Below the pieces are notes generated by a model. It worked only from the letters and a program-made list of their open reading frames with translations, ran no database searches and was not told where the DNA came from. From Lepidodermella squamata (taxonomy: Eukaryota; Animalia; Gastrotricha), in assembly GCA_047495785.1 (NCBI GenBank), contig JBLDXI010000036.1, forward strand, positions 558,001 to 622,000: 64,000 bases of DNA, in the 5' to 3' direction. Positions 43,126-64,000 of the stretch are shown piece by piece (position 1 is the stretch's first letter; each line of letters starts with the position of its first letter). The position numbers and the translations under genes were made by a program.

Positions 43126-43411
43126 TTCGACTGCACCCAGCAGCGCTGTGTGGCCTGTTCTGGCTAGCGCTGAAATCATGACGGCGCAAAATGCTTATAC
43201 TGCAGTGATATCGCAGTATAATAAAAAGTCTATAATGCACGCATACTCAATCACTCACGCGCGAGTGATAACAAGACCGATCGCGCTTCATTTTATTGCA
43301 TACTTGGATATATATATTCGCCATGACCGCCACCACCAATTATCATTATACCAGACACATAAGTGCCGTGTTTGTTTTTCGCCCTCAACAAATTCGATGT
43401 TGCTGCTTTTT

Positions 43412-45035
43412 TTACAAACTGAAGCGATCGGAGAAGAATTTGCGCATTCGGTCCAGGAAATAAGGACGGCCTCCGTTCGATTTCTTTGATTCAACAGCCT
43501 TGTTTTTGGTTGATGATGGCTTTTGATTAGATTTGCCAGAATTAGGTCGGGTCACCTTGGACATTCGCGAGTTTGTCTTTTTCGCTTGTTTGACGGTCTT
43601 CTGAGGCTGTTTAGCTCTACCTACATTTTTCTTGCCATTTTTACCCCCTTGTAAAACTGGTTTCACGGCTTTTTTCGGGTATTTGCTAGCCTCTTTCTTA
43701 GGCTTTGAAAGTTTTGTAGGGGTTTGCTTCAATTTTCCATTTTTCACCGGTTCCGCTTTCGCAGCTTTCTGGGTCTTTGGTTTAACATTAAGGGTTTGCG
43801 TTTTGAGAGGAACCGCGGCTACGGGCTTGACCTGGACTGCCTTGTTAGTTTTCTTCGTAGTCGGGTTATACTTTACGTCGATATGGGGCGGCGTTTTCTC
43901 GAAAGTATACGTATAGCCATCTCCATTCGAATACTGCTCATCCCCATTGCTCAGCCTGCCAATGAATTTAAACTGACTTTTCACGAGTTTTTCCAGTCCA
44001 GGATTTTGCGACAGGCTGTAGTCGATTTTGTACCCGGTTGCGTGGGAATATTCGCCGGATTTATGCCCGACTTCAGTGCCGCCGGTTACAACCAAGGTTC
44101 GGCCGTAGAGCTGGCGTAGATTGATTGCTGATTGAACAACTTCAGGCCGCATACCGTCAAGAGAAGTGCATCGCTTGTTAGTTTTATCATTGCAATTGCC
44201 ACTGCTGCTTAGTTTGATACCTTGAAATCAAAATGGACACTAGATTTTAGTGAGTAGATAGGTCTCTAAGGAAAATTCAAAATTTATCGATTTTCGACAT
44301 TTTAGAAGAAAAATTCTTCGAATTTCCGTTTCCTTTTTCTATTAGCTAAGAGCTAAGAAATGAAGTTTTTAGGATTTTAGATAACGAGAGGATTTGTCTA
44401 TTTTTTCACGATTTTCTATGTTTTTTTCTAAATTTACTAAAATATCAGACAAAAAAAGCAAATTAATCTTATAATTTCCGTTGTTCTTCAAAAAATTATA
44501 ACTTGCCATTTTGTCGAAATATTTCGTAGTTATTTGAATTTCCCTTTGTGGGAGGTTTCGGCGCAGTTTGAGGGCTTGACACTGGCTTCGCTGGGCTTTG
44601 GATAGCGTAAGGCGTTGCAGCCATGCGAGATTGTACTTTCGCCCAGTATTTAACGGTAGATTCTGCTCTACAACCTCGCGGGCCTCCGTTGTGGATCCTC
44701 GCGAAATCCTGACAAGTCGGCTGGCGATCACTACCAACACACCGCTGTGCGTATCGTTTCATGTAGTTCTGCACGCATCGCTCGCTGCACTGCATTGAAG
44801 CGGCGCATTTCTTCCAGTCTGGATCGACCCCACCGCCGGGCAGACAGTCTTTATGGTAGTCTTCCTTGATTTGATACGGCCCGCATGACAGCGAATTGAC
44901 ATCATATTTACAACCGGTTTGAGCCGCGTTGCAGCCGCTTTCTTGAAGGCAGATGGCCTTCAGGCAAGAGCCATCAACATCGGCATTTGCTATGGCTAAA
45001 ATAGCTGATATAATTATTGCTAAATTCGAGACCAT
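43412..45035 (-). CDS. Secreted i-type lysozyme fused to an M15/Hedgehog-like zinc peptidase domain and a Lys-rich tail (exons 45035-44507, 44220-43412; 445 aa)
   Basis: Signal peptide; destabilase motifs CLKAICLQESGC, SCGPYQI, CQDFARIHNGGPRGC; GC-AG intron in phase 1; then SSSGNC..RCTSL, TGGTEVGH, SHATGYKID, HIDV. Confidence 0.78.
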
Positions 45036-45317
45036 GTTGATATGGGAAAATAATATTGTAAATTCTGCGGGCAATTTTTCAAAGGGGCGTGACTGAAAGC
45101 GTGGGTGTTTAGCCATATTTTTTTCCTTCCCACGAATTTTAACAGCTACATATACAACTTTATCACGGCACCTGAAGTCTCTCAGCTTACAAAAAGAAGA
45201 ATAATCATGAAAATAACGCATTTACAAACATCCTTTTTTATTTGATAAAAACGGTACTTGTGCTATATTTCAATGCTAATATTTGTGAATCTGTCAAGTG
45301 AAAGTGGGTATTTATAT

Positions 45318-45887
45318 TTATAATTGAGATACTAATATGGAAGCTTTTGCTGTAGCAGATTCGAAATTTCGTCTATCCAGCTTTTTCACGTCTTTATGAA
45401 GAGCTAAAATAGGAAGGTTGCCACATAGTCCTGGTAAAAAGGCGCAATTCGCAAAAAATGTGAAAGCGCATTGAAATACAATGATAATCAAGGAAAAAAT
45501 GCAGAGAAATAGCTCAGGTGATATGGGGAAAAAGTTGCCCGAACTTGACACACAGCAATATGAGTACAGCGTATAAACTGAAGGAGCGAGGATGATATTA
45601 GCGATCAGCAACAGTAAAGCCGATTTTGAATGAAAAAAACGAACAGGTAAAGTGTGAAAAATCTTGCATTTAAACGGCTGGTCACACTCTCCACAAACTG
45701 GCGGCAAATTAGATGGGTTTGATCGAATAAAATTCTCGAAGCAAATTCGATGAATATAACAGGCTTCGCATGAACAAATGCTTTCGTATAATTCACCAGT
45801 ATTAGTAGCTAAATTGCTGCCAGGTCTCATGAAAGTTTGATTCGGACCCAACTTGCAAAATCGGCAAACAGGCTCTAAAAGGGCCAT
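45318..45887 (-). CDS. Small RING-CH (MARCH-like) protein with two TM helices
   Basis: CRFC..CSC..IHRIC..CGEC C4HC3 motif followed by 2 TM; start inferred from the paralog (MALLEP). Confidence 0.8.
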   Translation of the reverse strand: MALLEPVCRFCKLGPNQTFMRPGSNLATNTGELYESICSCEACYIHRICFENFIRSNPSNLPPVCGECDQPFKCKIFHTLPVRFFHSKSALLLLIANIILAPSVYTLYSYCCVSSSGNFFPISPELFLCIFSLIIIVFQCAFTFFANCAFLPGLCGNLPILALHKDVKKLDRRNFESATAKASILVSQL

Positions 45888-46213
45888 TTGAAATAAGCTG
45901 AAAGATTGAAATTCTGTGCGGATCAGCCATCGTGCCACATTTATAGGCATGAGGTAATGCGAAAATCAATAAGCGGAACCTCGCGTAGTGTGCGTCTAGA
46001 CCGTACAAAATCAAAACATGCGAGTGACCTCACGCAATGAATCATCGGATTACGCACTTGCGCACCTGAAGTCTTACAAAAAATGACAGATAATCATGAA
46101 AATAACTTAGAGGAATTACTCCTTTACAAACATCCCTTTTTATTTGATAAAAACTTTATATGTGCTATATATTAAAGCTAATTTTTGAAAATCAGTCAAT
46201 TGAAAGTGGGTGT

Positions 46214-46771
46214 TTATTGTCGAGAGATATATTTGGAAGCTTGCGCCGTAGCAGAATCAAAATTTTGCCTATCGACTGTTTTCACATCTTCATGAAGATT
46301 CAAAATTGGAAGTTTTCGATATAAATTCGGTACAAATATTATGTTGGCGAATAATGTCAAAGCAAATTGAACTATAATGACGATGAATGCTAAAGCGCAG
46401 GGCACAAGTTGATGCCATGATGCCACACAGCAGAAATAGAACGACGTAACTACTAAAGGAAGGAGCAGGAAATTAGCAAACAGCAAGATTCGTGCCGATT
46501 TTGAATTCAGTAACCGAGCTATAACATTGCGGAGAATCTTGCATTTGAATGGCGTATTGCAGTCTCCACATATCGGAGGCAAGTTACCGCGATCTGATGC
46601 GTTTGATCGTATAAAATTCTCAAAGCAATCTCGATGAATGTAATTGGCTTCGCATGAACATATGTTTTTATATAATTCACCAGTATTACTAGCTATGTTG
46701 CTGCCAGGTCTCATGAAAGTTTGATTAGGACCCAACTTGCAAAATCGGCAAACAGGCTCTAGTAGGGCCAT
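46214..46771 (-). CDS. Small RING-CH (MARCH-like) protein, tandem paralog
   Basis: Same architecture; ~890-bp tandem unit including flanks. Confidence 0.8.
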   Translation of the reverse strand: MALLEPVCRFCKLGPNQTFMRPGSNIASNTGELYKNICSCEANYIHRDCFENFIRSNASDRGNLPPICGDCNTPFKCKILRNVIARLLNSKSARILLFANFLLLPLVVTSFYFCCVASWHQLVPCALAFIVIIVQFALTLFANIIFVPNLYRKLPILNLHEDVKTVDRQNFDSATAQASKYISRQ

Positions 46772-50930: not shown

Positions 50931-51089
50931 GGCTAATATCAGGAGGAGGGGACCCAGACCGTAAAAAAATCCGGAAAAAAATCGGTTAAAAGGAGTAGAA
51001 TTGGCAGAAAATAAAGGAAAAAAAACAGACAAAAAAAAACAAGAAAAAAAAAGATATAAAAAACGAGGTCAATACATTCATTTTTTATT

Positions 51090-51743
51090 TCAATGTTCAG
51101 TGTGGGAGATATCATCTAGGATAGTTAAATCATCGTCATTGAGTTCTACGGAGAAATGGGTTTCATATATAGAGGAGCAAAAAAGGATGAATTTGGTGAC
51201 TAGGGCTAGTCCATCCTCGAATGTGTTGAATCCCATAGCGGTGAACTTGTGTGAGACAGGGAATAGATTTACTTTTCCGAGATTGAATGTGAGGCGTATG
51301 GCAGAGAATGTTTCAGGAATGTAAACAGTCAAAATTTGTTCGGGACTCGATGCTCGCAGCATAAGGTTGTACAGCGACGTTGTGCATGTAAATCGAAACG
51401 GCAGTGTCCCAGTGAGAACAATGTTTCGTATTTTGAAGTCTGAGAAGTCAGGATCACGCCTGATCCAACGGGATATTCTGAGTGCCATTCGACGAGCATC
51501 TATCTCGAAATCGAGAATGGATTTTGCACCCATCCCACCTAGAATGATTACTCGTCCTGAAGAGGAAACCATTGCAGTGATATTTCTTTTCAAGCATCTT
51601 ATTTTAACATTGCGAGGGACGGAGCTGCTATTAAAGTAGGTATTGACTCCAGTTAGCGCTAGCAGTCGTAGATTAACATGACAGTTCAAAGAGAATGTAG
51701 CAACAATGTTTGCAATGCGTAGATCAACGTCGTACTGGATCAT
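51090..51743 (-). CDS. Divergent TATA-binding-protein-like protein
   Basis: Two TBP repeats: IANIVATFSL...TAMVSSSGRVIILG and FKIRNIVLTG...YIPETFSAI...VNLF. Confidence 0.8.
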   Translation of the reverse strand: MIQYDVDLRIANIVATFSLNCHVNLRLLALTGVNTYFNSSSVPRNVKIRCLKRNITAMVSSSGRVIILGGMGAKSILDFEIDARRMALRISRWIRRDPDFSDFKIRNIVLTGTLPFRFTCTTSLYNLMLRASSPEQILTVYIPETFSAIRLTFNLGKVNLFPVSHKFTAMGFNTFEDGLALVTKFILFCSSIYETHFSVELNDDDLTILDDISHTEH

Positions 51744-51749
51744 TTGTAG

Positions 51750-51975
51750 TTAATCCGATGTAAGAAGCGGCTCCAAGTATACTCCGTATCTAGTTATCAT
51801 ATCTGTCTCATATTGAGAAGTTATAAGGTCTAAGGTAGAGCGAGCAGACGGACGAAGTTTGGGCTCCTTCGTCAGCATGGTAAATAGAATATTCAGTAAT
51901 GGATCATAAAACTTGACATCTACAGAACACACTGCTTTTATACAGTTTAAGAACGAGCTGATGTCTTTAGTTTTA
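51750..51975 (-). pseudogene. Possible protein kinase C-terminal remnant
   Basis: LLNILFTMLTKEPKLRPSARSTL resembles kinase subdomain XI; the N-terminal part is missing. Confidence 0.4.
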
Positions 51976-51989
51976 GCAATGACATCTAA

Positions 51990-53192
51990 ATCTACTACGA
52001 TCCTGCCGAGCCGGGTAGCTTGGGTAGCGTTACTGCTCTCTACAAAGCATACAAAGTCAAACATCCGAAGAGGGCGGTTAACGTCAAACAGGTCCGCGAC
52101 TGGCTAGGTAATCAGCGAACTTGGAGTGTATACAAGCAGGTCAGCACGCGCAATCGGAATAAGAGAAAAGTAGCATGCTTCAGTCGTCATAGTCTGTTCG
52201 CCATTGACTTGCTTGACGTTCGAAATCAGAAGGACAGCAATGATAACACGCAGTACTTACTCACCTGTAAAGATACTTACTCTAGAATGGCATTCGTTCA
52301 GCCCATGAAGAATAAGACTGCTGAAGAATCATTGCGAGCGCTGAAACGAGTTTTCAATGATCTTAAGCGTGTGCCATACGCTGTCGTGGCAGACCGAGGG
52401 CTTGAGTTTTTCAACAAAAAAGTAACGACTTACTTGAATAACTTGGGCGTACACATGTTTTCAACCAACTCTGAGAAAAAAGTTCCACAAATTGAATCAT
52501 TCAACAAGCTACTCCGAATTAGACTTGCGAAATTGGCCTTAGCTCGGAACGACCATCGATACCTGGATGACCTTCAAGACATTGTAAGAGTTTATAATCA
52601 AAGCAAACATTCTGTAACCAAAATGTCTCCAATCGCGTTGTACGAAGATGCTGATAGTGGTCGTAAGATCGATAGTTACCCCAATTTAAACCTTGAGATA
52701 TTCGAAGATAGTCCTATGCAGCTGGAAGCATTTGAAAACATTTTTGGACCAACATACAAAGCATCCAACCGTCAGAAAAATATATCAGAGAAACAGAAGT
52801 TTTCTGTTGGGGACGTTGTGCGAATATCTGCAGAGAGGGGTGTGTTCGATCGTACCCGCCATTTCAATTACACGGATGAGTATTTTAAGGTGGCGAGGGT
52901 AATCGCAGCGGACGATTTCGGGCCTTACACATACAAATTGAATGGATGGAGCGCCGACGATGGAGATTACACCGATACGGTGGCAGGCGTGTTTTATTCT
53001 TACGAGCTTCAAAAAGTCCGCCTTCCAGAAGAGTACCTCATTGATGAAATAGGAACAGAAAAACGTAAATTTCCAGATGGGACAACGCGGGTTTTAGTTA
53101 GTTGGCTCGGCTTTCCTCGATCTCAAAGTTCATGGGAACCTATTAGTGCAATCAAGAAGGTGGGATCGCGGGCGCCTAAAAAGCGGAAATGA
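51990..53192 (+). CDS. Retroviral-like (rve) integrase with C-terminal chromodomain; start codon missing or frameshifted
   Basis: IYYDPAEPGSLGS N-terminus; D (FAIDL), D (VADRGLEF), E (IESFNK); chromodomain LVSWLGFP...SWEP. Confidence 0.92.
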   Translation: MYYDPAEPGSLGSVTALYKAYKVKHPKRAVNVKQVRDWLGNQRTWSVYKQVSTRNRNKRKVACFSRHSLFAIDLLDVRNQKDSNDNTQYLLTCKDTYSRMAFVQPMKNKTAEESLRALKRVFNDLKRVPYAVVADRGLEFFNKKVTTYLNNLGVHMFSTNSEKKVPQIESFNKLLRIRLAKLALARNDHRYLDDLQDIVRVYNQSKHSVTKMSPIALYEDADSGRKIDSYPNLNLEIFEDSPMQLEAFENIFGPTYKASNRQKNISEKQKFSVGDVVRISAERGVFDRTRHFNYTDEYFKVARVIAADDFGPYTYKLNGWSADDGDYTDTVAGVFYSYELQKVRLPEEYLIDEIGTEKRKFPDGTTRVLVSWLGFPRSQSSWEPISAIKKVGSRAPKKRK

Positions 53193-53202
53193 TATATAAA
53201 AG
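53193..53202 (+). promoter_or_regulatory. TATA box (TATATAAAAG); equivalents at 55646, 56236 and 58059
   Basis: TATATAAA lies 48-63 nt upstream of four structural/packaging ATGs. Confidence 0.65.
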
Positions 53203-53255
53203 CCAATGAGTAGATCACCCTGAAAAAGAATTTATCTATCATCATAATATCTGAA

Positions 53256-53342
53256 ATGCCATCGCGAGTCAGGCGAGTTTATCGTAAGCGAAAATACACA
53301 GCTCGTCGACGTTCATATAAGACCATCCGTAGACGGTACTAA
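53256..53342 (+). CDS. 28-aa protamine-like Arg-rich core peptide
   Basis: MPSRVRRVYRKRKYTARRRSYKTIRRRY; downstream of a TATA box; stop overlaps the next ATG (TAATG). Confidence 0.65.
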   Translation: MPSRVRRVYRKRKYTARRRSYKTIRRRY

Positions 53343-53608
53343 TGCAATCGTCCACCTCATTACCGTGCCGATTAGATCACGCGGACTTTAAGATAATAGC
53401 AACAACGCAACGAGATCGACTAGATAGTTGTCGAAGCACAGGCAGTAGGTTTCTAGCAGCAGTTTTGGCGAGGCGAACAATAGTAGGTGCTGCCTCAGTA
53501 TCTCTACTATTGACAGCGTGTTTCGCGATTGAAATTTGGAACGAACAGCTGTTGAAATACCTGATATCAAGCATCAGCAGTAATTCCACCCGGAATAATG
53601 TCACCTAG
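53342..53608 (+). CDS. Small predicted single-pass membrane protein
   Basis: Hydrophobic segment IVGAASVSLLLTACFAI; overlaps both neighbouring ORFs. Confidence 0.5.
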   Translation: MQSSTSLPCRLDHADFKIIATTQRDRLDSCRSTGSRFLAAVLARRTIVGAASVSLLLTACFAIEIWNEQLLKYLISSISSNSTRNNVT

Positions 53609-55637
53609 ACCACATGAAATTCTCATTTACTTGGCGTCAAACGCTTCAAATTCATTGTTTCCGAATAATACTCCGTCATCATTCAGAATTAAGTTAGCGA
53701 ATGAAATCGATCTTGGTGGAACTGGAAATTGGGAGATGGCCTTATTAGAATTTAATGGTCCATCTCGTTGGCAGTCTCTAGAACCTATGAGTTTCTACGC
53801 GTTCGACTGTGCCTACATAGATGCTCTTAAGTATGAGGTGGATCCATTTAAAAAGGGGAAGGTCCATGAATGCCAGGTAGGAGGAGCTTATTACGCAGAT
53901 GTGGGGGATCTCATTTCGCATATGAACAAAAAAAACCCACTCGCGCGCGACATTAGACTTACATTCGACAAGAAATCGAACAGGGTCTCAGTGGACATCA
54001 CAAAAGGTAGCAGTGGAATTTATTTACCCACGATGCTAGCACAGGTCCTCGGTTTCCCAATCGCAGTTCTAGCGTTCCACTCGTTTGACGCTGAGGAAGA
54101 AGCTGCGATTAAGGCACTTGCTTACGACTTTGGCCATTTGTTGGGCTATTTCATCGCAGCTGCAGAGGGAAATGGTGGGGGTGGGGTAGGACGAAGATAC
54201 AAGCAGTCCCCTATTCCTCCGTACAAGCTGTCACAACCTCTCAATCAGTCAGGGAAAGAAATATTTGAAGGTCGAAAAATCAATTACGTGGGAAAACTAT
54301 ATGAATATCATAGTGGAGTAGGGGAAAACTTGAAATTTGATGGTGCTGAGGAGGAAATGGAAAAAATTAAGCGAGTGAAAAGGGATTCCCAGTCACGCGC
54401 AGTCAGCACTGGTCCTGCTGCATCTAGTAAAAATGATGTTGATTCAAGTGTAGATGTGTCGAATCCGAGTAAATTATTGAGTACCATTACAGCCCCCGTC
54501 ATCAACGTGGGGGCTAATCAACAAGCTCAAACTGCAGCCATCGATTCGGATCTTCCCACCACTGCATCCCTCAATGATGACGTAGCAACGAAAAATAATC
54601 TCGGAGAGACAGGAAACGTGACAATCGAACAACACTCCTCAGCAGTTACTGATACCCGGAATTCCCAAGCCGAAATTACTGATGCAAATGTTCAATCGAC
54701 AAGTGAGGCTCCAGATCAGGTAGGCAATCAGGCCAGCGCGAATAACGCACAGCCACCCTCAAATACCAGCCTTCCAGCAAGTGGTCGATCCGATGAAAGT
54801 CTACAAAATAAATCAGAAACTCACAAGAGTGGAGATGGAGAGATTGCTACGGTGAAATCAGAATCTTCAACCAGTGCAAAGAACACAGAGTCGAAATCTG
54901 ATCAAGAAGCTCCGCAGAATCCGGAAACGAGTAGTACGGACTCTGTGCCTCCCGTAAATAATAACAGAGCGGGCTCACAGTCATCCCCGAATAACAACAC
55001 TCCGCCCAGTGCTAATCTAGCAGATGAAGGCCTGACAAATAAACAGGAAAATCGGAATGGAGAACGGGAAAATACTGAGGAGGTGAAAGCCAAATCTTCA
55101 ACCGAAGGAGATGCGAAGAAGGTAGGATCGAATTCAGATCAAGAAACTCAGGCGCCGTCGATAAATCCAGACCTTCCGCAAAAAGACAATTCGAATTCTG
55201 AAATTTCTGAGAACACACCTGGATCAACTCAGCTGCAGCAGCCTAAGGTTGTGAAGAGACCGAGCTCGAAGGTGTTACACTCAATCGAATCTAGCTACCT
55301 CTATTACAATGTGAATAGCAAAAAGCAAGCACCTTATCCTCCACAGCTCGACTACGGATGTCCCTACCTGTACGTGTACCTGGACGTGCTTGATGACGTG
55401 TATGTCGGCGATTCGTTAACGCCTCTCCTACGAGTCATTCCCACGGAGAAATCTCACGATAAGCAAACTTTCTTCTCGAAGACATTTGAAAAGCCAATCT
55501 ATGTACCGATAAAGCGTCGTATGCTTGATGTCATTGAAGTCAGCATCAACAGAGACACAGGGGCTGAAGTGGTCTTCGAAGGTGGCAAGGTCTTGTTACT
55601 TGTTCATCTGCGCCCAACAAGCGGCAATAGACACTAA
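53598..55637 (+). CDS. Polinton minor capsid protein (penton) with a long low-complexity insertion
   Basis: N-terminal LASNAS..FPNNTPSSFRIKL...WEMAL; C-terminal LYVYLD...VGDSLTPLLRVI...PIYVP. Confidence 0.85.
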   Translation: MSPRPHEILIYLASNASNSLFPNNTPSSFRIKLANEIDLGGTGNWEMALLEFNGPSRWQSLEPMSFYAFDCAYIDALKYEVDPFKKGKVHECQVGGAYYADVGDLISHMNKKNPLARDIRLTFDKKSNRVSVDITKGSSGIYLPTMLAQVLGFPIAVLAFHSFDAEEEAAIKALAYDFGHLLGYFIAAAEGNGGGGVGRRYKQSPIPPYKLSQPLNQSGKEIFEGRKINYVGKLYEYHSGVGENLKFDGAEEEMEKIKRVKRDSQSRAVSTGPAASSKNDVDSSVDVSNPSKLLSTITAPVINVGANQQAQTAAIDSDLPTTASLNDDVATKNNLGETGNVTIEQHSSAVTDTRNSQAEITDANVQSTSEAPDQVGNQASANNAQPPSNTSLPASGRSDESLQNKSETHKSGDGEIATVKSESSTSAKNTESKSDQEAPQNPETSSTDSVPPVNNNRAGSQSSPNNNTPPSANLADEGLTNKQENRNGERENTEEVKAKSSTEGDAKKVGSNSDQETQAPSINPDLPQKDNSNSEISENTPGSTQLQQPKVVKRPSSKVLHSIESSYLYYNVNSKKQAPYPPQLDYGCPYLYVYLDVLDDVYVGDSLTPLLRVIPTEKSHDKQTFFSKTFEKPIYVPIKRRMLDVIEVSINRDTGAEVVFEGGKVLLLVHLRPTSGNRH

Positions 55638-55705
55638 TCAATTGCTATATAAAAGCTTGATGTTGTGTAATTATCTTACTATAGCTGTCGAAAGTTTGAA
55701 ATAAA

Positions 55706-56230
55706 ATGCATAGCGCTGATGCTTACGAGGCTTTTCTATTGCACCAAAGTGGATACGGTAACATTGAGCCGTACCGCGGTCATCCGATAGTATTCCCATC
55801 TTATCAGGTGAATATCAAAAGGAGGAATAGGAATATATCGTTTACAGAGAATTTATGTGTATAGGTTGGCTCAGGATTCGGCAGTATGGCATCAAATTTT
55901 TTCCGAAGGTAGAAGAATAATGCGAGTGTCAAATATATTTAATTTCCCCATTTCAGGCACTTCATACCTCTGCTCGGACCTCTATTCCGTAATCTCAGTG
56001 CTACATCAGCAAACATTGCAGCTGACCTCATAGAAAACAACAGCGCAGATCCAGGTTCCGTTTTGAAACAACGGGGACTTGAAGGAGTCAAAGGTCTGGC
56101 ACGTGACGTGCTGTCCCGCGTCGGAACTCAAATGGGCTCAGGTCGCAGGCGACGACGCACGAAGACAAGTAAAACTGCTCCGAAGAAGAAGAAGGGGCGG
56201 AAGACGTCAAATAAGCGTGTCTACCTATAA
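55706..56230 (+). CDS. Polinton core/membrane-active protein (exons 55706-55807, 55865-55908, 55957-56230; 139 aa)
   Basis: Three QxGxG motifs (QSGYG, QVGSG, QMGSG), an amphipathic helix and a basic tail; introns of 57 and 48 nt. Confidence 0.8.
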
Positions 56231-56283
56231 AATTGTATATAAAGATGAGAGATCTCCTCTAGCTTTTATCCAAAACCAAAACA

Positions 56284-57567
56284 ATGTTCATCCATCCAGC
56301 GAGTGAGCATGCACTGCGTAGCGAGCTCAACGTTTTTACACTGACACCAACGCAAGTTGAAATCGAAAGCAACTACATCAATGAGTACAGTCCTACAACA
56401 TCTCTGACGAATGGCAACCGTATAGATTTTGATGTCCCAGCAAGTGGGGACTGGACAGATTTAAGCCGGTCATTTATTGAGGTCGTATGCAAAATCGAGA
56501 AAAATGCAGCGGGAGGAGAAGCAGCTGAAGCCGTACCAGTAAACTTGTTACTTCACTCGTTATTTAGTCAAGCGGATATGTCTTTGAATAACGTACAAAT
56601 TAGCGAACCGAGCCCGACGTATCACTATCAATCAATGATATCAACACTTTTGAGCTATAGCACGGAAGCAAAGAGTACACACCTGGCTCTGCAGGGATAC
56701 TTCGAAGAAGAAGCTGGGAAAATGGATGATGTTTCAGACACGGATGTATACAAGAAGAAGTTGGAGTGGGTTAAGAAAGGTGAACTCGTTTTGATAGGAA
56801 AGCCGCACCTCACGCTTTTTGGACAGCCCAAATTTTTGATCCCTGGCTGTATGCTCAAGTTATCATTCATTCGAGCTCCTGATGCATTCGTGTTGATGTC
56901 TTCCAAAGCGGCCGGAACTTACAGTCTAAAGGTCACCAGCGCGAAGTTGTTGCTTCGTAGGGTAAAAGTAGCTCCTCAGTTCACGTTGGCGTTGAATCGA
57001 ACTTTGACTAAAACACCTGCCAAGTATGGAGTAGTTCGAAGCTTCATAAAAGTTCTGAACCTACAGCAAGGGTCGTTCAACTACAACTTTTCGAACGTAC
57101 ACATCGGAAAAATTCCACGACGTTTGGTTCTTGCTCTCGTGTCTGACGCTGCATTCAAAGGAGACCTTAAAAAGAATCCTTACAACTTCGTTCATAAGGA
57201 CATTCAACGGATCTCGGTATACATTGATAGCGAACATGTTCCACTCAGTCCCTTGGAGGTTGACTTCTCAGGAACAGCGAGTAACCGCGCCATGCATGCG
57301 CTAAACGAGGCAATACACCCGTTCTCGAATCGGAAGAGCTCACTGACTCTAGATGAATTCTCGAAGGGTGGCAAATGCTTGTTCGCATTTGATCTCACTC
57401 AAGACTCGAGCAGGAGTGTGTACAGTGTCGTAAAGACTGCAGTAATGAAAATTGACTTGGTATTTAAAACAGCACTGGATGAAAATGTGGCTCTGTTATG
57501 CTACTTTGAATCCGACCAAGTTTTAGAGGTAACATTCAACCGCTCTGTTGTAGCTGATTTCACCTAA
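56284..57567 (+). CDS. Polinton major capsid protein (double jelly roll)
   Basis: SELNVF...PTQ, LHSLFSQ, GKIPRRL, KNPYNF and FAFDLT motifs. Confidence 0.92.
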   Translation: MFIHPASEHALRSELNVFTLTPTQVEIESNYINEYSPTTSLTNGNRIDFDVPASGDWTDLSRSFIEVVCKIEKNAAGGEAAEAVPVNLLLHSLFSQADMSLNNVQISEPSPTYHYQSMISTLLSYSTEAKSTHLALQGYFEEEAGKMDDVSDTDVYKKKLEWVKKGELVLIGKPHLTLFGQPKFLIPGCMLKLSFIRAPDAFVLMSSKAAGTYSLKVTSAKLLLRRVKVAPQFTLALNRTLTKTPAKYGVVRSFIKVLNLQQGSFNYNFSNVHIGKIPRRLVLALVSDAAFKGDLKKNPYNFVHKDIQRISVYIDSEHVPLSPLEVDFSGTASNRAMHALNEAIHPFSNRKSSLTLDEFSKGGKCLFAFDLTQDSSRSVYSVVKTAVMKIDLVFKTALDENVALLCYFESDQVLEVTFNRSVVADFT

Positions 57568-57568
57568 T

Positions 57569-58171
57569 ATGCTGAACGGAGAGCAATTGAACACGCAGCA
57601 ACTAGATTATTTGCTATACAATGATCATTATCTCCAATGCAATACACCAATAAAAAAGACTATTCCCTGGGACTTGTTATTCAATTTCCGTCGGTCGTCA
57701 ATTGCTCGACCTATGGGTTTCATCGTGAATACTGATAGTGCGGGACGACCAGGCAGGCATTGGCTTGCAATCTATGTACCCATACAACGAGACCCTGCAG
57801 TGCTATTTGATAGTTTTGGTCAGCGGGGTTTCTTCTACAACGAAGCTATCGAAGATTTTTTGCTAGATATAAATTCATTGGATGAGTATTCATTCAATGC
57901 AAAGCCGTATCAGAGCCTTGATTCAGCCGTTTGTGGGTACTATTCCTATTTGTTTTTGCATTGGATGGCGCGCGGAGGCAGCATAACTTCTTTCCAAGGA
58001 CTCCTGGACCGAAATCTTAGCAATGTCGACTCCTTTGTAGTGAATCAGGTGAAACGCCTATATAAATCAGGAAAACACCCTCCGTGCTCACATTGCTCTA
58101 CGAGGGATCAAACATGTCTACCAGCACGCATGTGGCAGTGCCGAAGGAAATTGAATGCTCCCTCAGTTTGA
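57569..58171 (+). CDS. Adenain-like cysteine protease
   Basis: VNTD...GRHWLA, FDSFG, QSLDSAVCGYY. Confidence 0.92.
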   Translation: MLNGEQLNTQQLDYLLYNDHYLQCNTPIKKTIPWDLLFNFRRSSIARPMGFIVNTDSAGRPGRHWLAIYVPIQRDPAVLFDSFGQRGFFYNEAIEDFLLDINSLDEYSFNAKPYQSLDSAVCGYYSYLFLHWMARGGSITSFQGLLDRNLSNVDSFVVNQVKRLYKSGKHPPCSHCSTRDQTCLPARMWQCRRKLNAPSV

Positions 58172-58504
58172 AAGCTCCATTTTGCGCACTAGTAATTGGT
58201 CCGTCTGGAGCTGGTTAGTGTATATATTTCACGCTCTATAAAGTATATAAAATGAATTTTCGGTTTTGTATTAGGAAAGACTGAGCTGATTCGTAAGATT
58301 CTCAACGATGTAGAGTCGATAACACCAGCTCCGAAAAGAATACTGTGGTTGTATGGAGTTAGTCAGAAATTACACAACCACATCAAGGAAGAAGTTTTGG
58401 CTTCAAGAGGCATTGAAATCGAATTTCGCTCGGGTCTAGATAGCCTTAATTTCTCAGAGTTTGAAACTACAGCCGCAGAGGATGTCGAACCGGGACAGCT
58501 CTAA
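58114..58504 (+). pseudogene. A32/FtsK-like packaging ATPase, spliced (intron 58214-58274) and truncated before Walker B
   Basis: KAPFCALVIGPSGAG|KT: Walker A is split by a 61-nt intron; then PAPKRILWLYG; stop at 58502 with no Walker B. Confidence 0.8.
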
Positions 58505-58616
58505 TCGAAATTACCTAGTACAGCGTGGAGGTGCAGCCTTTGTTGTTCCGCTTTTGAGTGCTGCTGCAAGTTTGCTACCAACCATAGTAGAAGCCATTGT
58601 GAAAGCAAAGCGATAA
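58480..58616 (+). pseudogene. C-terminal remnant of a conserved small Polinton protein (LVQRGG + amphipathic tail)
   Basis: ...RNYLVQRGGAAFVVPLLSAAASLLPTIVEAIVKAKR*; stop overlaps the ATG at 58616. Confidence 0.55.
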
Positions 58617-59701
58617 TGGCAAGTTCCGAAGGAAAATACGTGCGACGTTATGCGTTAACTCCCGTCGCAGCAGGAGCAACTGCTACTACCAGTAAAACCT
58701 TCGTTTCCGAAGGGGATAAAAATGGTGAAATTGCTGATCTGAAGCGCGTTATACGTGAAGCTACTCAGGTTCCACAAAAGGCCCAGCTCCAACGCCACAC
58801 TGAAGCTATGCTTGATTTACTGTCTCCAAATTCAGAAGCAGCCAGTGATCCGAGAGCTCAACTTGCACGGTTCAACGCTGCTTTCTCAGACTTTCAAAGC
58901 GTCATTAGAAATCTGAAGCGTGCAGAAAAGGAACAGGAAGATGAAATAGTGAATAAGCAAACAGTCAAAAAAAGCTCAGCCACAGCACCCAATACTATCG
59001 ATGATGATGACGAAGAGATGAATGAAAAACACATCCCGCTGGGATCATCTACACCGAAGTCTAGATTTCATCGCATACCATCCTTGCTAAAAACATCACC
59101 AAGTAAATGGAGAACGTTGCACCCCATTTTACGTGGCATAGCAAAGAATCGCAGGGGTCGACCAGCATTGTTAAAATCATCCGTAGGGCGGGCTGATAAT
59201 GGAACCCTTCCAAAGTTGGAGTCGATTGAAGCTGAAATAAATGAAGATGAAGCCCCACTTGCTAGCTATGAATTATCACACCCTGAAGATGCTGCCATTG
59301 TTGGAAAATTCAAAACAAAAACTAAGCAGCAAAAAGTAGCACGAATGATCAATGAGTTGCGCGCTAGTCAAGACAGTGTTATACTTGATCGCAACCACCT
59401 CAAATTGCTATCTGATGATGGAAGCATCAAGGATGCATTTGACACTGACCAATTTCTGGATTTAGCAACTGAAAAAAATGTACCTAGTAGTATGATGAAT
59501 GAGAGTATGAGGAGACGAATGCGAAATGTCGTACGTGCCGCGAAACTCACCGTTCAAAATCCACGCCTCGATCGCACGGAACTCGAATTGAGGGATGGTA
59601 CACGGACATCGGCAGGACCGTCACATGTAAGCAATCAGAAACACGGACGACGTAGAAAACGGGAGCGTCAATGGCTGGCATGGATCCCGAAGCGACCTTA
59701 G
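58616..59701 (+). CDS. Polinton hypothetical protein (361 aa)
   Basis: Long ORF in the gene block, TAATG overlap at the start, AATAAA downstream at ~59744. Confidence 0.7.
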   Translation: MASSEGKYVRRYALTPVAAGATATTSKTFVSEGDKNGEIADLKRVIREATQVPQKAQLQRHTEAMLDLLSPNSEAASDPRAQLARFNAAFSDFQSVIRNLKRAEKEQEDEIVNKQTVKKSSATAPNTIDDDDEEMNEKHIPLGSSTPKSRFHRIPSLLKTSPSKWRTLHPILRGIAKNRRGRPALLKSSVGRADNGTLPKLESIEAEINEDEAPLASYELSHPEDAAIVGKFKTKTKQQKVARMINELRASQDSVILDRNHLKLLSDDGSIKDAFDTDQFLDLATEKNVPSSMMNESMRRRMRNVVRAAKLTVQNPRLDRTELELRDGTRTSAGPSHVSNQKHGRRRKRERQWLAWIPKRP

Positions 59702-59968
59702 CTAATATGTATTATATATCTTATGATCATGTTAAGACTCTAAAATAAAATAATAACATTGATGATTATGATATGGGCGTTTTCTCCGAATTTTATTATG
59801 TAAGGAGGATTAAGGTGTTCCTAATTGAGCAGGGAAGATTAATGGATTAAGGAGGATTATTATGCTGTTCCCAATCAGATATAGTGCACCACGCTTTCCC
59901 GGACCTAACCAGACGGATGTCAAACTTATCGGCAGCTCCATCGACCAGAACTATATATAAATTCATTT

Positions 59969-60322
59969 TTAGTAGTAAAACATTAGAGTAATAGAAAAAG
60001 TAATACCACACAAAATGCTGTCATCATGTATGTGTGTCCAGTCATACACTACCATCAGGTCTTCAACACGAGCCGGCTTGTGGCCCCAATCAGCTGGCCA
60101 ATTTCTGTAAATGCGACGTTTGAGCGCCAAAATATCGTAAGCGTAACGATCGCAGATGAATACCATCGGGTTGTAGTCTCTCCAGTAAACAGAAACGCGA
60201 ACCTCATACTCCAGCATGCAGCATTCCGTGTTCTCAAATATGGAGTATGTGTCAGAAACGCCACTTAAATCAGACCAGCTGCTGCTGCTTGAATCTGATG
60301 ACGAGGAAGTCTCATATGCCAT
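59969..60322 (-). CDS. Ubiquitin-like (UBL3/MUB-like) domain protein
   Basis: LALKRRIYRNWPADW...DLMVVY resembles the UBL3/MUB NWP.DW signature. Confidence 0.5.
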   Translation of the reverse strand: MAYETSSSSDSSSSSWSDLSGVSDTYSIFENTECCMLEYEVRVSVYWRDYNPMVFICDRYAYDILALKRRIYRNWPADWGHKPARVEDLMVVYDWTHIHDDSILCGITFSITLMFYY

Positions 60323-60410
60323 TCATAAAATTCTAAGATTTGAGAGTAGTAGTTCGTTATATCATTTGCGACATAGATGGGTTGATTTTATTAAATGTTG
60401 AAGATGATTA

Positions 60411-60812
60411 TTAGGAGTCAGTGATTTTCCTGTAACTACAGGCCCTCTCGTGAGTACGTATGTTATTCGAGAGGGACGTGTAATTACATCCAGATTTGGT
60501 GTATGAGCATCGAAACTGCAGCTTGGATAGAACTTTCCGGAGAGGAGGCGGACCTGGATTGATGTGAAAAAGCGAAAATGGGCATCTACAAAGTGGACAG
60601 GTGGACATAGCGAAAATTGTCCTGCAAACATCCGCAGTCGCTCTGTGCCATTCATAGATACAGCGCTCGCAATATGAATGCTGGCAGTTGTTCAGAAAAA
60701 CTGGAAACCGCTTGACAGCGAGGCAAATCGAACATGTTATCTCTCGCAGAATTTGGCACGGATCTATTAGATGATCCGTAACAACCCGATCGACTTCCAG
60801 TTGACGAGGCAT
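60411..60812 (-). CDS. RING-HC + TRAF-type zinc finger E3 ligase
   Basis: CSIC...CQHSYCERC...CPLCR followed by LSKLQFRC...GC...HERAC. Confidence 0.85.
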   Translation of the reverse strand: MPRQLEVDRVVTDHLIDPCQILREITCSICLAVKRFPVFLNNCQHSYCERCIYEWHRATADVCRTIFAMSTCPLCRCPFSLFHINPGPPPLRKVLSKLQFRCSYTKSGCNYTSLSNNIRTHERACSYRKITDS

Positions 60813-60876
60813 TTATGCAATTGAGGAAAATTCAAATAAAGGTCTAAGATTTAAAAAAAACAACGTTTTTGCGGTC

Positions 60877-63800
60877 CTATTGTACTGGTTTATGCCGGTA
60901 GCCGTAAGGTACTGAGCAGAAGGTAATCGGATTAAAGATTCTCTTGTTGTTCAGTTGAGGAGTAACTCTTTTCTCGATTTCAACTAACGAAACAGATGCT
61001 GGGACATGACATCTTGAGAACACCTTTTGTGGGATGACAAGACCCACATCCGATTTTCCACTAGATGCTGCGAAGTAAGAGTGCAGTAAGTGTTCCATCG
61101 ACTCGTGTGTAAGAATGCTGTCAGAGAAACTTTGAGATATCCCTGTGAACAATTAAATCAAATCTATCGAAGAGTTGTTATTAGCTGAGAAAATTACCCT
61201 TATACTTGATCTCACATCTCCCCAAGTTACTACGCCATGAATAACTTTTACTAGCCACGGCGAAGAAAGATTCGATAAATTCTCCTTTGTCTTCGCGAAG
61301 TTCTGCCTTGAACTCCCCTGTAACGGTTGGAGGTGATTGGCTATTGACATTGAACATACAACTTACCCAAGTGGATGCCTTGTTTCAAATCTTCGTCACC
61401 TGGTCGGAGCAGGTAAATTACGGAATCCGCTGTAGGCAGTGCACCAGGATTAAGAAGCGATTTCAAAACTTGGATGAAACTTACTATCGACATATAGAAG
61501 CCTGTCCCCTAATTTTTCCATCTAAATTTCAGATTAAGTTGGGTATCGTAGTAGAGGCAAGGTGCTAACCTGTTCGTATAAGGTGAGTCTGGAATAGGCA
61601 GTAATGAAACTTGCCAGTATTTCTGCCGTATTGTTTGAGGGTTCCTCATGTCCATTGCTAACAGAGTATGTCACACGGACTCTTTGAGATGAGTCATCAA
61701 CGCCGATAGGGTGAATAGAATGAACCTCAAAACTTGGAGAGTCCATTATTTCGATCAGTTCATGAGACTCCTCCAGATATTTAGTTACTGGATTTGAAGT
61801 TTTTAAACAAAACCGTCCGAAAAAGCTTAAATTTGTTAGAACCAAGCTGCAAAGTTTTTAAAACTGGAAAATATTCTAATCAGACCTATTTTGCAGAATT
61901 TTGGAAATCTGCCGGAGAGCTGGATTAGGATTAGCTAGTTGAGTTTTGCATGGTTCGAATCCATACCGCTCTTTGCATTCCCGCACGAACTCTTCCGGGT
62001 TGATATTTGAGGGAATACTTGAGTTAGATATTTTCATGTGTTGCAATGATAAGATAAACTCGCGAAATCCGAGATTCGATTTCATCGGAAAATGAAAAAT
62101 TTCGTAAAACTCCAGTACGTGATAGCCCAGCTCGGTGGCCTTTCTCAATTCTTCCGAAACCCACACCCCGCAAAATGACCTATCCTCGATACTATGACAG
62201 CATTCTGTAGTTGTATTTTTATCGAGGTAGCACTTCCGACATAGAATGAACACGAGCCGTTCTTCGTCTGCGGATTTCCACCCTAAAAGGGGAAGGAGTA
62301 AATTCGGCGCGAGAACCTAAGCAATGAAACCGTGAGGATACGGTTACGGTAATACTACAGCATATTCTAACCTTGGCGCTAACTAATCCGAATGAATGTT
62401 CCTCGAAAAAGTGTTTTCGAAGCCAGGCATCATCCATTCTCCTCCGCATGACCTCTTTCGATATATGCCCATGTGGATAGAGTTTGTTAGCACATGACGC
62501 GGGATACAAGCTTACAGCATCTCGAATGAGAATCTTCTCGCCGGGTTTAACTATGCACTTTGCCACAAAGGGCTCGTTCCTACCGCCCTTCATTAATACG
62601 AATTTTGGAAAAAGAGAATAAGAGAATTGTTAAGATCGTACCTGAAGAGCGGATCGAGGCTTTATCTGCTCAACGACTTTGAAGTTCGCATCAACATATT
62701 TCGCAATATCAGGATTATCCCTTAAGAAAGCGGCCCATTCGCATGAGTAAATGGTAGTCACTGGATAAAGTTCTCGCAAAGCTGCAATGTGCTTTGAGGT
62801 TTCGTATGATAGCTGTCCAAACGATTTCATGAGCAGAAAATTCATTTTGTTCTCCGGATAACAATGATGTCCATGATGATAGCATCCTGCAGCGAACCTC
62901 AAGTTGAGATTATTTCACTGTCACGTTTCACTCACCTAAAAATTCGAAGCAGCGTACGATATCCCCCGTCTGCTGATTTCGTACTATACCATCGATTTTG
63001 CGCATGCCATTGCGTGTTCGAACACGCACCTCTCGACCGTTCAACGCTGACTCTATAACAACATTCGTGCTCATCGAAATGTACCATAACCATTGGTTTG
63101 CTATCCGGCTAGCTGTATCCCTAAGACAGTAACCTTGGGGTGGTAGGATCGCTATAGATTGAGGAATCATATATTTGAGCTGAAGTGAGCATGAAATGAT
63201 GAGAAATGTATTTTACAGTAAATCAGCCTTTACCTTGAATATGAGATGAGCCAGGGAAGATAAGCTGAGAACATTAGCGAAGCAATCTACGCCTAAAGGA
63301 GCCCGTTCACATGTGGAGAGCTGGAGAATCCACTGTCGGAAGCGCATCGCTCCTAGTCGTAATATTATAACATCCATTGACACGTATTTTCGCATTTCAG
63401 CTTGGAAGTCGTAGATTGCCCCAGAAGCCTGCTTTTCCGAAATCATATCGCGAAGGCTTGCTACTTCACTAGGTGATAGTTTCGACAGGTCGTAGTTTTC
63501 TATGGATGGCCAAGACCCTCGATAGAATAGATTCTCAGGTTTGTGAAACACATGTGGAAAGTGTAGTTTCCCAATATCTTTTCCTAAATCCCCCAAAGAG
63601 AATGCTGCTGGAATGCTCGATAAGGGACAATTCAGGAATAAATAGGAATCTATGAATCTAAAAATATTGGAGACATTGCACTGAAAAAGTAATGCAGCGG
63701 TATCACCTTGGCCCTGTAGTCCCGCCACATCGAAGCTCCATTACTCGATTATTCCGCTCTACAGTCGTGATTCTAACATTGTTTTCTTGGCAATACTGGA

Positions 63801-64000
63801 GGGCGAACAGTGTATCGAATCTTCCTGTGATCCATTTAAAATACCCAGATAATATAATCACTGAGAAAACGACGTCTACCTCCATAATGGCTGATAATAG
63901 TGAGATTCCTGTGCTTTTCGTTCAAAACAAAGCGCATGAATGCGGGAAAACTGTCTTCGCTATCGTAGAAGAAGATTTCTCTGCAGCCATTCTCGCATAC
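60877..64000 (-). CDS. polB: Protein-primed family B DNA polymerase, 5'-incomplete in the window, 11 introns
   Basis: Spliced motifs SHYG|GRFD, R|FIDS, EFL|GCYHHG, ALQ|GGRNE, DAVSLYP, KILQN|SFFGRF, YVD|TDS, KYK|GI, PYGY. Confidence 0.92.

Follow-up and report, generated by a model that had tools for sequence, protein, structure and literature searches.

A spliced gastrotrich gene joins an i-type lysozyme to a LAS-fold domain and a polycationic tail

Can an animal gene combine a lysozyme of its own with a wall-cutting domain taken from elsewhere, and if so, is the second part still an enzyme? These questions are raised by a locus at positions 43412 to 45035, minus strand, of a 64,000-nucleotide window (the whole stretch of DNA that was analyzed) on contig C36 of a 121-Mb eukaryotic assembly, that of the gastrotrich Lepidodermella squamata, which was also the genome searched. 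A sequence-only reading had described here two open reading frames (ORFs) that together would encode an i-type lysozyme, a peptidase domain of the M15/Hedgehog fold and a Lys-rich tail, and the features and coordinates that it listed are all present in the sequence. We ran sequence searches and structure prediction exon by exon, on each exon separately. The two ORFs are one spliced, expressed gene for one secreted protein of ~445 residues, and we consider it probable, at roughly 0.7, that this protein is secreted and combines a host lysozyme with a cell-wall peptidase of foreign origin, bacterial or fungal, that the animal has domesticated, and with a cationic tail.

The whole coding region (43412..45035, minus strand) has two exons and 445 codons plus a stop: 176 residues, one split Gly codon and 268 residues. 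Exon 1 (45035-44507) is open from the ATG at 45035, and exon 2 (44220-43412) is open up to the stop codon at 43414-43412. The spliceosomal intron between them (44221..44506, minus strand) is 286 nucleotides long, of phase 1 and of the GC..AG type (donor G/GCAAGT, acceptor TTTCAAG/, the slash marking the exon boundary); removal of 44506-44221 fuses both frames via the split Gly codon, and the product reads ..FRQN-G-IKLSSSGNC. Is this intron spliced out in the animal? Three small public runs contain the locus (here X1, X2 and X3), and their contigs were mapped to 43200-45400. An X1 contig jumps between 44219 and 44506, leaving out exactly 286 bases, and two letters at its junction are ambiguous; of the three possible registers, only 44221-44506 (+1) is of a known splice type, GC..AG. 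In X3, which comes from a study other than that of X1, a 427-base contig lies on 44506-44916, and the 16 extra letters before it are those of 44204-44219; as they occur once in the window, the X3 junction is identical to that of X1. Contig depth in X1 and X3 is 0-4.5 in the intron versus 34-65 in the exons, and the X1 junction contig, at 34.6, has the depth of an exon. X2 covers the intron and its flanks evenly, in the manner of DNA. The proposal that the two ORFs join through a phase-1 GC-AG intron at 44506-44221 is thus borne out by junction contigs from two studies. The ends of the transcript can be placed as well: the 3' contig of X1 stops at 43283, 9 nucleotides past an AATAAA polyadenylation signal (43297-43292), marking 43283..43411 (minus strand) as the 3' untranslated region by its transcript-like contig end, and X1 depth falls to zero upstream of ~45050, which fits an mRNA start just before the ATG at 45035 and not a longer ORF from 45221.

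Might the fusion instead be an artefact, that is, two separate genes brought together by misassembly or contamination? Some points weigh on that side: X1 and X3 are only guessed to be RNA, none of the runs being recorded as such, their contigs give no expression levels, on its shorter side the X1 junction is covered by just 27 letters, and GC-AG introns are rare. Set against these are the recurrence of one junction in two runs from two studies, the exon-level depth of the junction contig, and the lack of any in-frame GT-AG alternative; for example, a GT four bases downstream, used with the same or the next upstream acceptor, leads to a stop. The window also holds introns, a long interspersed nuclear element (LINE) and a Polinton, and an identical gene structure occurs on a second contig that is collinear over ~45 kb. 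We judge an artefact to be very improbable.

The second contig deserves a closer look. C42 (262870-265054) carries an intact second copy of the gene at ~95% identity, with identical donor and acceptor and an open frame, and the ~45-kb collinearity identifies it as a second haplotype or homeologue and not as a dispersed paralogue. Both copy variants appear among the X1 and X3 contigs. Between the copies, the ratio of nonsynonymous to synonymous divergence (dN/dS) is low in the lysozyme (0.07) and in the LAS-like domain encoded by exon 2 (0.05), both of which are under purifying selection, and higher in the tail (0.44). Divergence is uneven along the gene: the copies differ by ~9% over ~500 bp (43650-44170) versus ~1.5% across 44200-44999, the intron is 99% identical, and 29 differences cluster at 45000-45099. 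Balancing selection was considered for the high dS of the domain (0.34) and rejected, as the map of mismatches fits a gene-conversion mosaic better; the pattern looks like gene-conversion tracts between haplotypes or homeologues. As to the extent of the similarity, window-C42 collinearity runs from ~1000 to ~50500, a sampled part of C42 (283001-293000) has no match to the window, and a Polinton-like element at 50941-64000 may be present in one of the two haplotypes only.

The first half of the protein has the expected appearance of a secreted animal lysozyme. A signal peptide of ~18 residues, read from the translation, begins with the start codon (44982..45035, minus strand), has a hydrophobic core and ends ..ANA before DVDGS. 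Residues 23-135 (44631..44969, minus strand) form an i-type lysozyme (Destabilase) domain, as had been proposed from the sequence: Pfam PF05497 Destabilase matches with E 9.3e-29 and 100.5 bits against a cut-off of 26.2, and leech destabilase in the PDB (8BBU) matches exon 1 with E 8.3e-34. In the destabilase precursor the muramidase site is Glu34/Asp46, and Ser/His residues have been proposed for an isopeptidase activity (PMC10126035). In our alignment with 8BBU, Glu32 and Asp45 of exon 1 fall on the muramidase Glu/Asp pair, and Ser48, Ser50 and His115 coincide with the triad that has been proposed for isopeptidase activity in the leech protein. The proteins closest to exon 1 are animal i-type lysozymes from echinoderms, leech and molluscs (45-57% identity), and the genome has at least 14 Destabilase matches; by these sequence comparisons, the lysozyme module is native to the animal. 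The domain is followed by a linker that is rich in Pro, Ser and Thr by composition (44507..44615, minus strand; residues 141-176, i.e. 36 residues, plus the first base of the split Gly codon). Elsewhere in the genome, one 392-residue open frame (C1:4194972-4196039) has three consecutive Destabilase domains, and further Destabilase genes are clustered on C1 (4.70-4.78 Mb) and on C12, and the i-type lysozyme family is expanded.

What, then, is the second domain? It spans exon-2 residues 1-118 (43865..44220, minus strand), and HMMER relatives, an AlphaFold model and structure matches mark it as a zinc-peptidase-type domain of the LAS (Hedgehog/DD-peptidase-like) fold. Ordinary annotation is silent about it: it has no match in Pfam, NCBIfam, PHROGs or, by phmmer, PDB sequences, a word-index protein search with exon-2 region 1-125 returned nothing, and neither did tblastn against 50,697 phage records. 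The blanks in PHROGs, NCBIfam and phage genomes indicate that the domain is not a recognizable phage endolysin family. An exhaustive HMMER (phmmer) search, by contrast with the word-index one, found 780 relatives at E<=1e-3, of which 207 reach E<=1e-10 and the most similar is 45% identical; their names are 'hypothetical', 'secreted', or automatic labels such as 'peptidase M15' and 'peptidoglycan-binding'. An alignment of 70 relatives has the signature SSG-C-DR-N..CTS, TGGTE-GH, SH-x2-GYK-x-D and E-x2-HWD. All eight columns that are invariant among the 70 sequences are kept in the window (E49, G51, H52, H59, G62, D66, H112 and D114), as are both conserved Cys of the family. When the genome was searched with the family profile, the window's domain scored E 1.6e-36 over positions 1-114 of 115. 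Judged by these alignments, the exon-2 domain belongs to an unnamed, mainly bacterial family that has no Pfam model. One apparent animal relative, P0012 (56% identity over 72 residues), was rejected: it is a frameshifted gene whose neighbors carry TIR, NB-ARC and TPR domains. In another protein, P0052 (2274 residues, with FAINT/DUF529 domains), ten stretches match query residues 21-75 (E 6.9e-15, 27% identity), possibly a low-complexity or repeat artefact.

Structure prediction gives the family a fold. The AlphaFold model of the domain, made with the family alignment, has a predicted local distance difference test (pLDDT) score of 93.4 and a predicted template-modeling (pTM) score of 0.85, and when it was compared with 48,161 PDB representatives, the top nine matches were all LAS-fold proteins, with Z from 7.2 to 4.3. 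ShhN leads (Z 7.2, 96 residues, 22% identity), and the catalytic module of VldE (6.9), a second ShhN entry (6.5), fly Hedgehog (5.8), the Streptomyces albus Zn DD-peptidase (5.6), MepA (5.0), two LdcB carboxypeptidases (4.8 and 4.7) and the LysB4 endolysin (4.3) follow; T5 endolysin, Ply500 and VanXY come next below. Foldseek ranks VldE best (E 1.2e-3, probability 0.99), then Hedgehog, MepA and a phage L-alanoyl-D-glutamate peptidase. ESM Atlas models of actinobacterial proteins superpose on the exon-2 model with a template-modeling (TM) score of 0.85-0.86 and a root-mean-square deviation of 1.1-1.7 A, and those language-model neighbors that bear a Pfam name are Peptidase_M15_3 and HH_signal. 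Additionally, the family profile places TGGTE-GH..SH..GYK.D on the zinc site of Shh, with H59 equivalent to H141 and D66 to D148. Three of the scores temper this picture: the Z-scores, of at most 7.2, lie where a common arrangement may suffice and where models with no clear match also have their best score (typically 7-8), the family profile run against PDB sequences finds Hedgehog proteins only, at an E of 0.26 over 38 residues that is not significant alone, and hhalign of the family profile against five actinobacterial Peptidase_M15_3 domains gives a probability of 3.5% (E 0.012) in the motif block only, with a very shallow template alignment. With Z-scores this moderate, it is the agreement among the top matches, together with the motif alignment, that carries the case, and on these grounds the exon-2 domain is, as modeled, of the LAS or Hedgehog-DD-peptidase fold (clan MD).

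Fold is not the same as family. The earlier description of an M15/Hedgehog-fold peptidase holds at the level of the fold, where the AlphaFold model, Foldseek and the PDB comparison all find an M15-like structure, and finds no support at the level of curated M15 families. The Pfam M15 models (Peptidase_M15, VanY, M15_2, M15_3 and M15_4) have no match to the window's domain at E<=1, and among 149 family representatives the Pfam models of M15 and Hedgehog give no match either, with cut-offs of E<=0.01 and E<=0.001. The Hedgehog N-domain PF01085 likewise has no match in the window's domain, and exon 2 runs into the Lys-rich tail, not into a Hint domain. The metal-ligand pattern of LAS enzymes is present in the sequence, as H59-x6-D66 and a later H112 that is preceded by an acid, E107; within exon 2 these residues stand in the motifs SH-x2-GYK-x-D (H59 to D66) and H112-I-D114. 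The putative metal or catalytic residues taken from the family alignment (minus strand) are E49, H52, H59 (44044-44042), D66 (44023-44021), E107, H112 (43885-43883) and D114 (43879-43877); H112 or D114 is the predicted third zinc ligand, and E107 the candidate general base. In other words, the zinc-ligand motif H-x6-D...H that had been read from the sequence is there in its first two elements and its late His, while the last motif departs from the H-x-H of DD-peptidases, being H-W-D in the family and H-I-D in the window. With no match to a curated model, an hhalign probability of 3.5% and H-x-D for H-x-H, the sequence comparisons lend no support to membership of M15, and we place the domain in an unnamed family of its own inside the LAS fold.

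The genome also contains a third, divergent member of this family, at C42:4906818-4909934 on the minus strand, with exon pieces at locus positions 1480-2184 and ~550-930. There, a SUEL-lectin exon (a weak match, E 3.8e-4) ends ..CVSLEGVR..YITG, covering profile positions 9-46, and an exon ~600 bp downstream resumes with GGTEV.. and ..SHQSGYRLDIA, covering profile positions 46-72. Its intron is not at the position seen in the lysozyme fusion.

Does the window's domain still cut? We lean, a little beyond even odds, toward an active peptidoglycan peptidase, on the basis of its alignment and model. The rival is that the LAS-like domain is non-enzymatic here and serves as a zinc- or peptidoglycan-binding targeting module, a pseudo-peptidase that steers the lysozyme. 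Several features tell against activity and in favor of such a module: Trp113, 90% conserved in the family, is Ile in the window (HWD to HID); the spacing from E107 to H112 is longer, with two Pro inserted, as it is in a few other members; and the domain sits on a long branch (1.08 versus a median of 0.41). These three traits may mark a changed or lost activity, and the family has no biochemically studied member. The best structure match is ShhN, and Hedgehog, for which a pseudo-peptidase role is often argued, shows that the LAS fold can serve without a demonstrated protease role. The divergent lectin-linked paralogue has replaced H52, H112 and D114 (..LWC for HWD) and is probably non-catalytic, which means that non-catalytic use of the fold occurs in this lineage. 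On the other side, at a dN/dS of 0.05, neither copy of the fusion gene has lost any of the eight invariant residues or the Glu ahead of the final His, and pure binding would not require the full set of candidate metal ligands. A binding-only domain is therefore an alternative that we take seriously but hold unlikely, and an active peptidase stays our preferred reading.

How did such a domain come to lie in an animal gene? A pattern scan of one genome per prokaryotic species confirmed at least 584 loci, and the best 80 of these are nearly all from Streptomyces, Nocardioides and other Actinomycetota, together with two Patescibacteria; the Streptomyces version is a secreted protein of 165 residues. 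Among the 149 representatives, 32 carry a T4SS-pilin module in a Patescibacteria-like gene context, and other fusion partners are WXG100, the core of extracellular contractile injection systems (eCIS), PG_binding_1 or PG_binding_3, and PAN or lectin (B-lectin, SUEL) modules; one ESM Atlas cluster consists of 72 actinobacterial proteins in which PG_binding_1 is always present. Some Patescibacteria-type relatives end in a weak SLT-like C-terminal domain, so a glycan cutter and an exon-2-type domain co-occur in bacteria too. A lysozyme (Destabilase) partner or a polycationic tail was found in none of the 149. Named eukaryotic members are few: the Agaricomycetes Coprinopsis, Ceratobasidium and Rhizoctonia, the springtail Allacma fusca and the bdelloid rotifer Adineta steineri. 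The genes of the two animals span more DNA than their coding length, from which we conclude that they have introns, and the Adineta steineri gene, on a contig of 569 kb, has ordinary eukaryotic genes as its neighbors. The springtail and rotifer proteins share 67-69% identity and are far closer to one another than either is to the window's domain. On the rotifer contig (CAJNOE010000015.1), a 154-residue gene with no Pfam match lies 900 bp upstream of the standalone LAS-like gene and may be a tandem paralogue.

The expectation that the family would be found mostly in actinobacteria and fungi agrees with this distribution, which is mainly Actinomycetota with some Agaricomycetes. A family that is overwhelmingly bacterial but scattered among animals shows the pattern that horizontal acquisition usually leaves, and what had been offered as a possibility, that the exon-2 domain entered the animal lineage by horizontal transfer, is now the most likely reading of these sequences. 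The donor is less well placed: two maximum-likelihood trees (143 and 101 rows; 115 columns) position the window's domain without support, its weak neighbors being T4SS-pilin-fused proteins in one and actinobacterial proteins in the other, and in an approximately unbiased (AU) test a single clade of animal copies was neither rejected nor supported (p 0.43). A genome search detected no canonical Hedgehog N-domain, with the search controls blank as well. We also considered whether the acquired sequence starts before the intron, so that the end of exon 1 would belong to it. Among the 15-mers of exon 1, the final one scores highest against the upstream helix of the bacterial relatives, but the score is negative and 3.7% of random 15-mers equal it; against the family's upstream-helix profile the match is not significant, and the idea was rejected.

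The third part of the protein is a polycationic tail (43415..43864, minus strand), defined by composition. In agreement with the ~150-residue Lys-rich tail of the sequence-only reading, it has 150 residues with 36 Lys and 7 Arg, a net charge of +38 and an isoelectric point of 11.2; five residues among these last 150 are acidic. In the genome it matches nothing apart from the two haplotype copies. It ends in the conserved ..GGRPYFLDRMRKFFSDRFSL, a possibly amphipathic stretch of ~20 residues, and the last ~45 residues are nearly identical between the copies.

Taken together, the parts suggest a mechanism. The lysozyme would hydrolyze the N-acetylmuramic acid-N-acetylglucosamine (MurNAc-GlcNAc) backbone of peptidoglycan, and the LAS-type domain, with zinc held by H59, D66 and H112 or D114, would hydrolyze a stem-peptide or cross-link bond by a chemistry modeled on VldE, MepA, LdcB and the phage L-Ala-D-Glu peptidases. 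The polycationic tail probably concentrates the enzyme on anionic surfaces rich in teichoic acid or lipopolysaccharide (LPS) and may itself disturb membranes, and the chimera would kill or digest bacteria, in defense or as bacterial food, with an architecture comparable to that of a multi-domain phage endolysin or of an antibacterial effector of bacteria. Zinc binding, peptidase activity, the peptidoglycan substrate, the role of the tail and an immune or digestive purpose are all things that we infer. The link to peptidoglycan comes from the relatives, which are fused to PG_binding_1/3, T4SS-pilin, WXG100 and eCIS-core modules; VldE, for its part, is a proven peptidoglycan L,D-endopeptidase (PMC11667670). 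Could an active peptidase have some other substrate, such as fungal or prey surface proteins, the animal's own extracellular matrix, or the cationic tail itself, which would then be released as antimicrobial peptides? The family is also found in fungi, some members are fused to PAN, B-lectin or SUEL-lectin modules, and no member has a known substrate, all of which leaves room for this; the repeated fusion of bacterial relatives to PG_binding_1/3 and to secretion-system effector carriers, the fact that every characterized structural neighbor except Hedgehog cuts peptidoglycan peptides, and a fusion partner that is here a peptidoglycan glycosidase all point the other way. We find another substrate improbable, less plausible than a binding-only domain, and favor peptidoglycan.

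Directly upstream of the lysozyme gene, on the minus strand, are two tandem paralogous ORFs (45318-45950 and 46214-46771; 210 and 185 residues). In each, the N-terminus is rich in Cys (..CRFCK..C.C....H..C......C..C..) and there are two hydrophobic segments; the pair possibly encodes RING-CH-like membrane proteins, and the first ORF is partly covered by X1 contigs.

What is new here is an uncharacterized family that has no Pfam model, and an architecture of lysozyme, foreign peptidase-type domain and cationic tail in one spliced transcript. If our reading is true, the gene is a natural case of a new antibacterial function made by exon-level fusion of host and foreign parts, and a family of Streptomyces, candidate-phyla-radiation bacteria and some fungi is put on the map. 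We are also attracted by the compactness of the design: a natural combination of glycosidase, peptidase and cationic tail is a possible enzybiotic scaffold.

How does the protein compare with known systems? With its own unnamed family, which is made up of small secreted proteins and of C-terminal domains of effectors and has Kutzneria among its actinobacterial genera, the exon-2 domain shares 37-46% identity over the whole 115-residue core and all invariant residues; the other animal members are standalone proteins of ~150 residues, and the window's copy has HID and sits on a long branch. With the i-type lysozymes (PDB 8BBU, 2DQA and 3AB6) the first domain shares the fold family, conserved muramidase and isopeptidase residues, and ~55% identity to destabilase, but the known proteins are single-domain, of ~120-140 residues, whereas the window's has ~300 extra residues with a second catalytic-type domain. 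The LAS enzymes (VldE, the Streptomyces albus Zn DD-peptidase, MepA, LdcB, VanX/VanY, and the phage L-alanoyl-D-glutamate peptidases T5, Ply500 and LysB4) and ShhN have in common with the exon-2 domain the beta-sheet/helix core, H-x6-D, and a late His on a strand with an acidic residue before it; the window's domain differs in having no significant sequence similarity to curated models and H-x-D in place of H-x-H, and, compared with Hedgehog, in lacking the calcium site and the Hint domain.

Animals that borrow bacterial cell-wall hydrolases are already known, for example through the dae genes of ticks and the rusticalin of ascidians. The dae genes of ticks and other eukaryotes derive from bacterial type VI Tae amidase effectors and encode secreted antibacterial factors. 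They share with the gene described here the takeover, by an animal, of a wall hydrolase of interbacterial competition, given that relatives of the window's domain ride on WXG100/type VII secretion system (T7SS), eCIS and type IV secretion system (T4SS)-pilin carriers; they differ in being NlpC/P60 cysteine amidases, not of the LAS zinc peptidase type, and are not known to be fused to a host lysozyme. To our knowledge, a borrowed wall-hydrolase domain fused to a host lysozyme has not been described before. Rusticalin is close in plan, with a horizontally acquired C-terminal clan-MD peptidase domain fused to an unrelated animal-type N-terminal region (PMC6339383), but that domain belongs to a different family, represented by the L-alanyl-D-glutamate peptidase of phage A500 (M15C), and its partner is a cysteine-rich repeat, not a lysozyme. 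A bacterial origin, from an Hh/DD-peptidase, has been argued for Hedgehog too (PMC6027127). Finally, phage endolysins and bacterial autolysins also carry glycosidase, peptidase and surface-binding module on one chain, whereas here the modules differ in origin, one being animal, one foreign and one a low-complexity tail of de novo-like character, and are encoded by a spliced animal gene. In its fullest form, to which we give an even chance, our proposal is that of an animal-built endolysin-like enzyme: a peptidase 'warhead' captured from T7SS, eCIS or T4SS-pilin carriers would stand behind a host lysozyme and be joined to a de novo polycationic anchor, cutting both glycan and peptide, and its domain would define a large, as yet uncharacterized LAS peptidase family, for which the Hedgehog ligand is the most similar solved structure.

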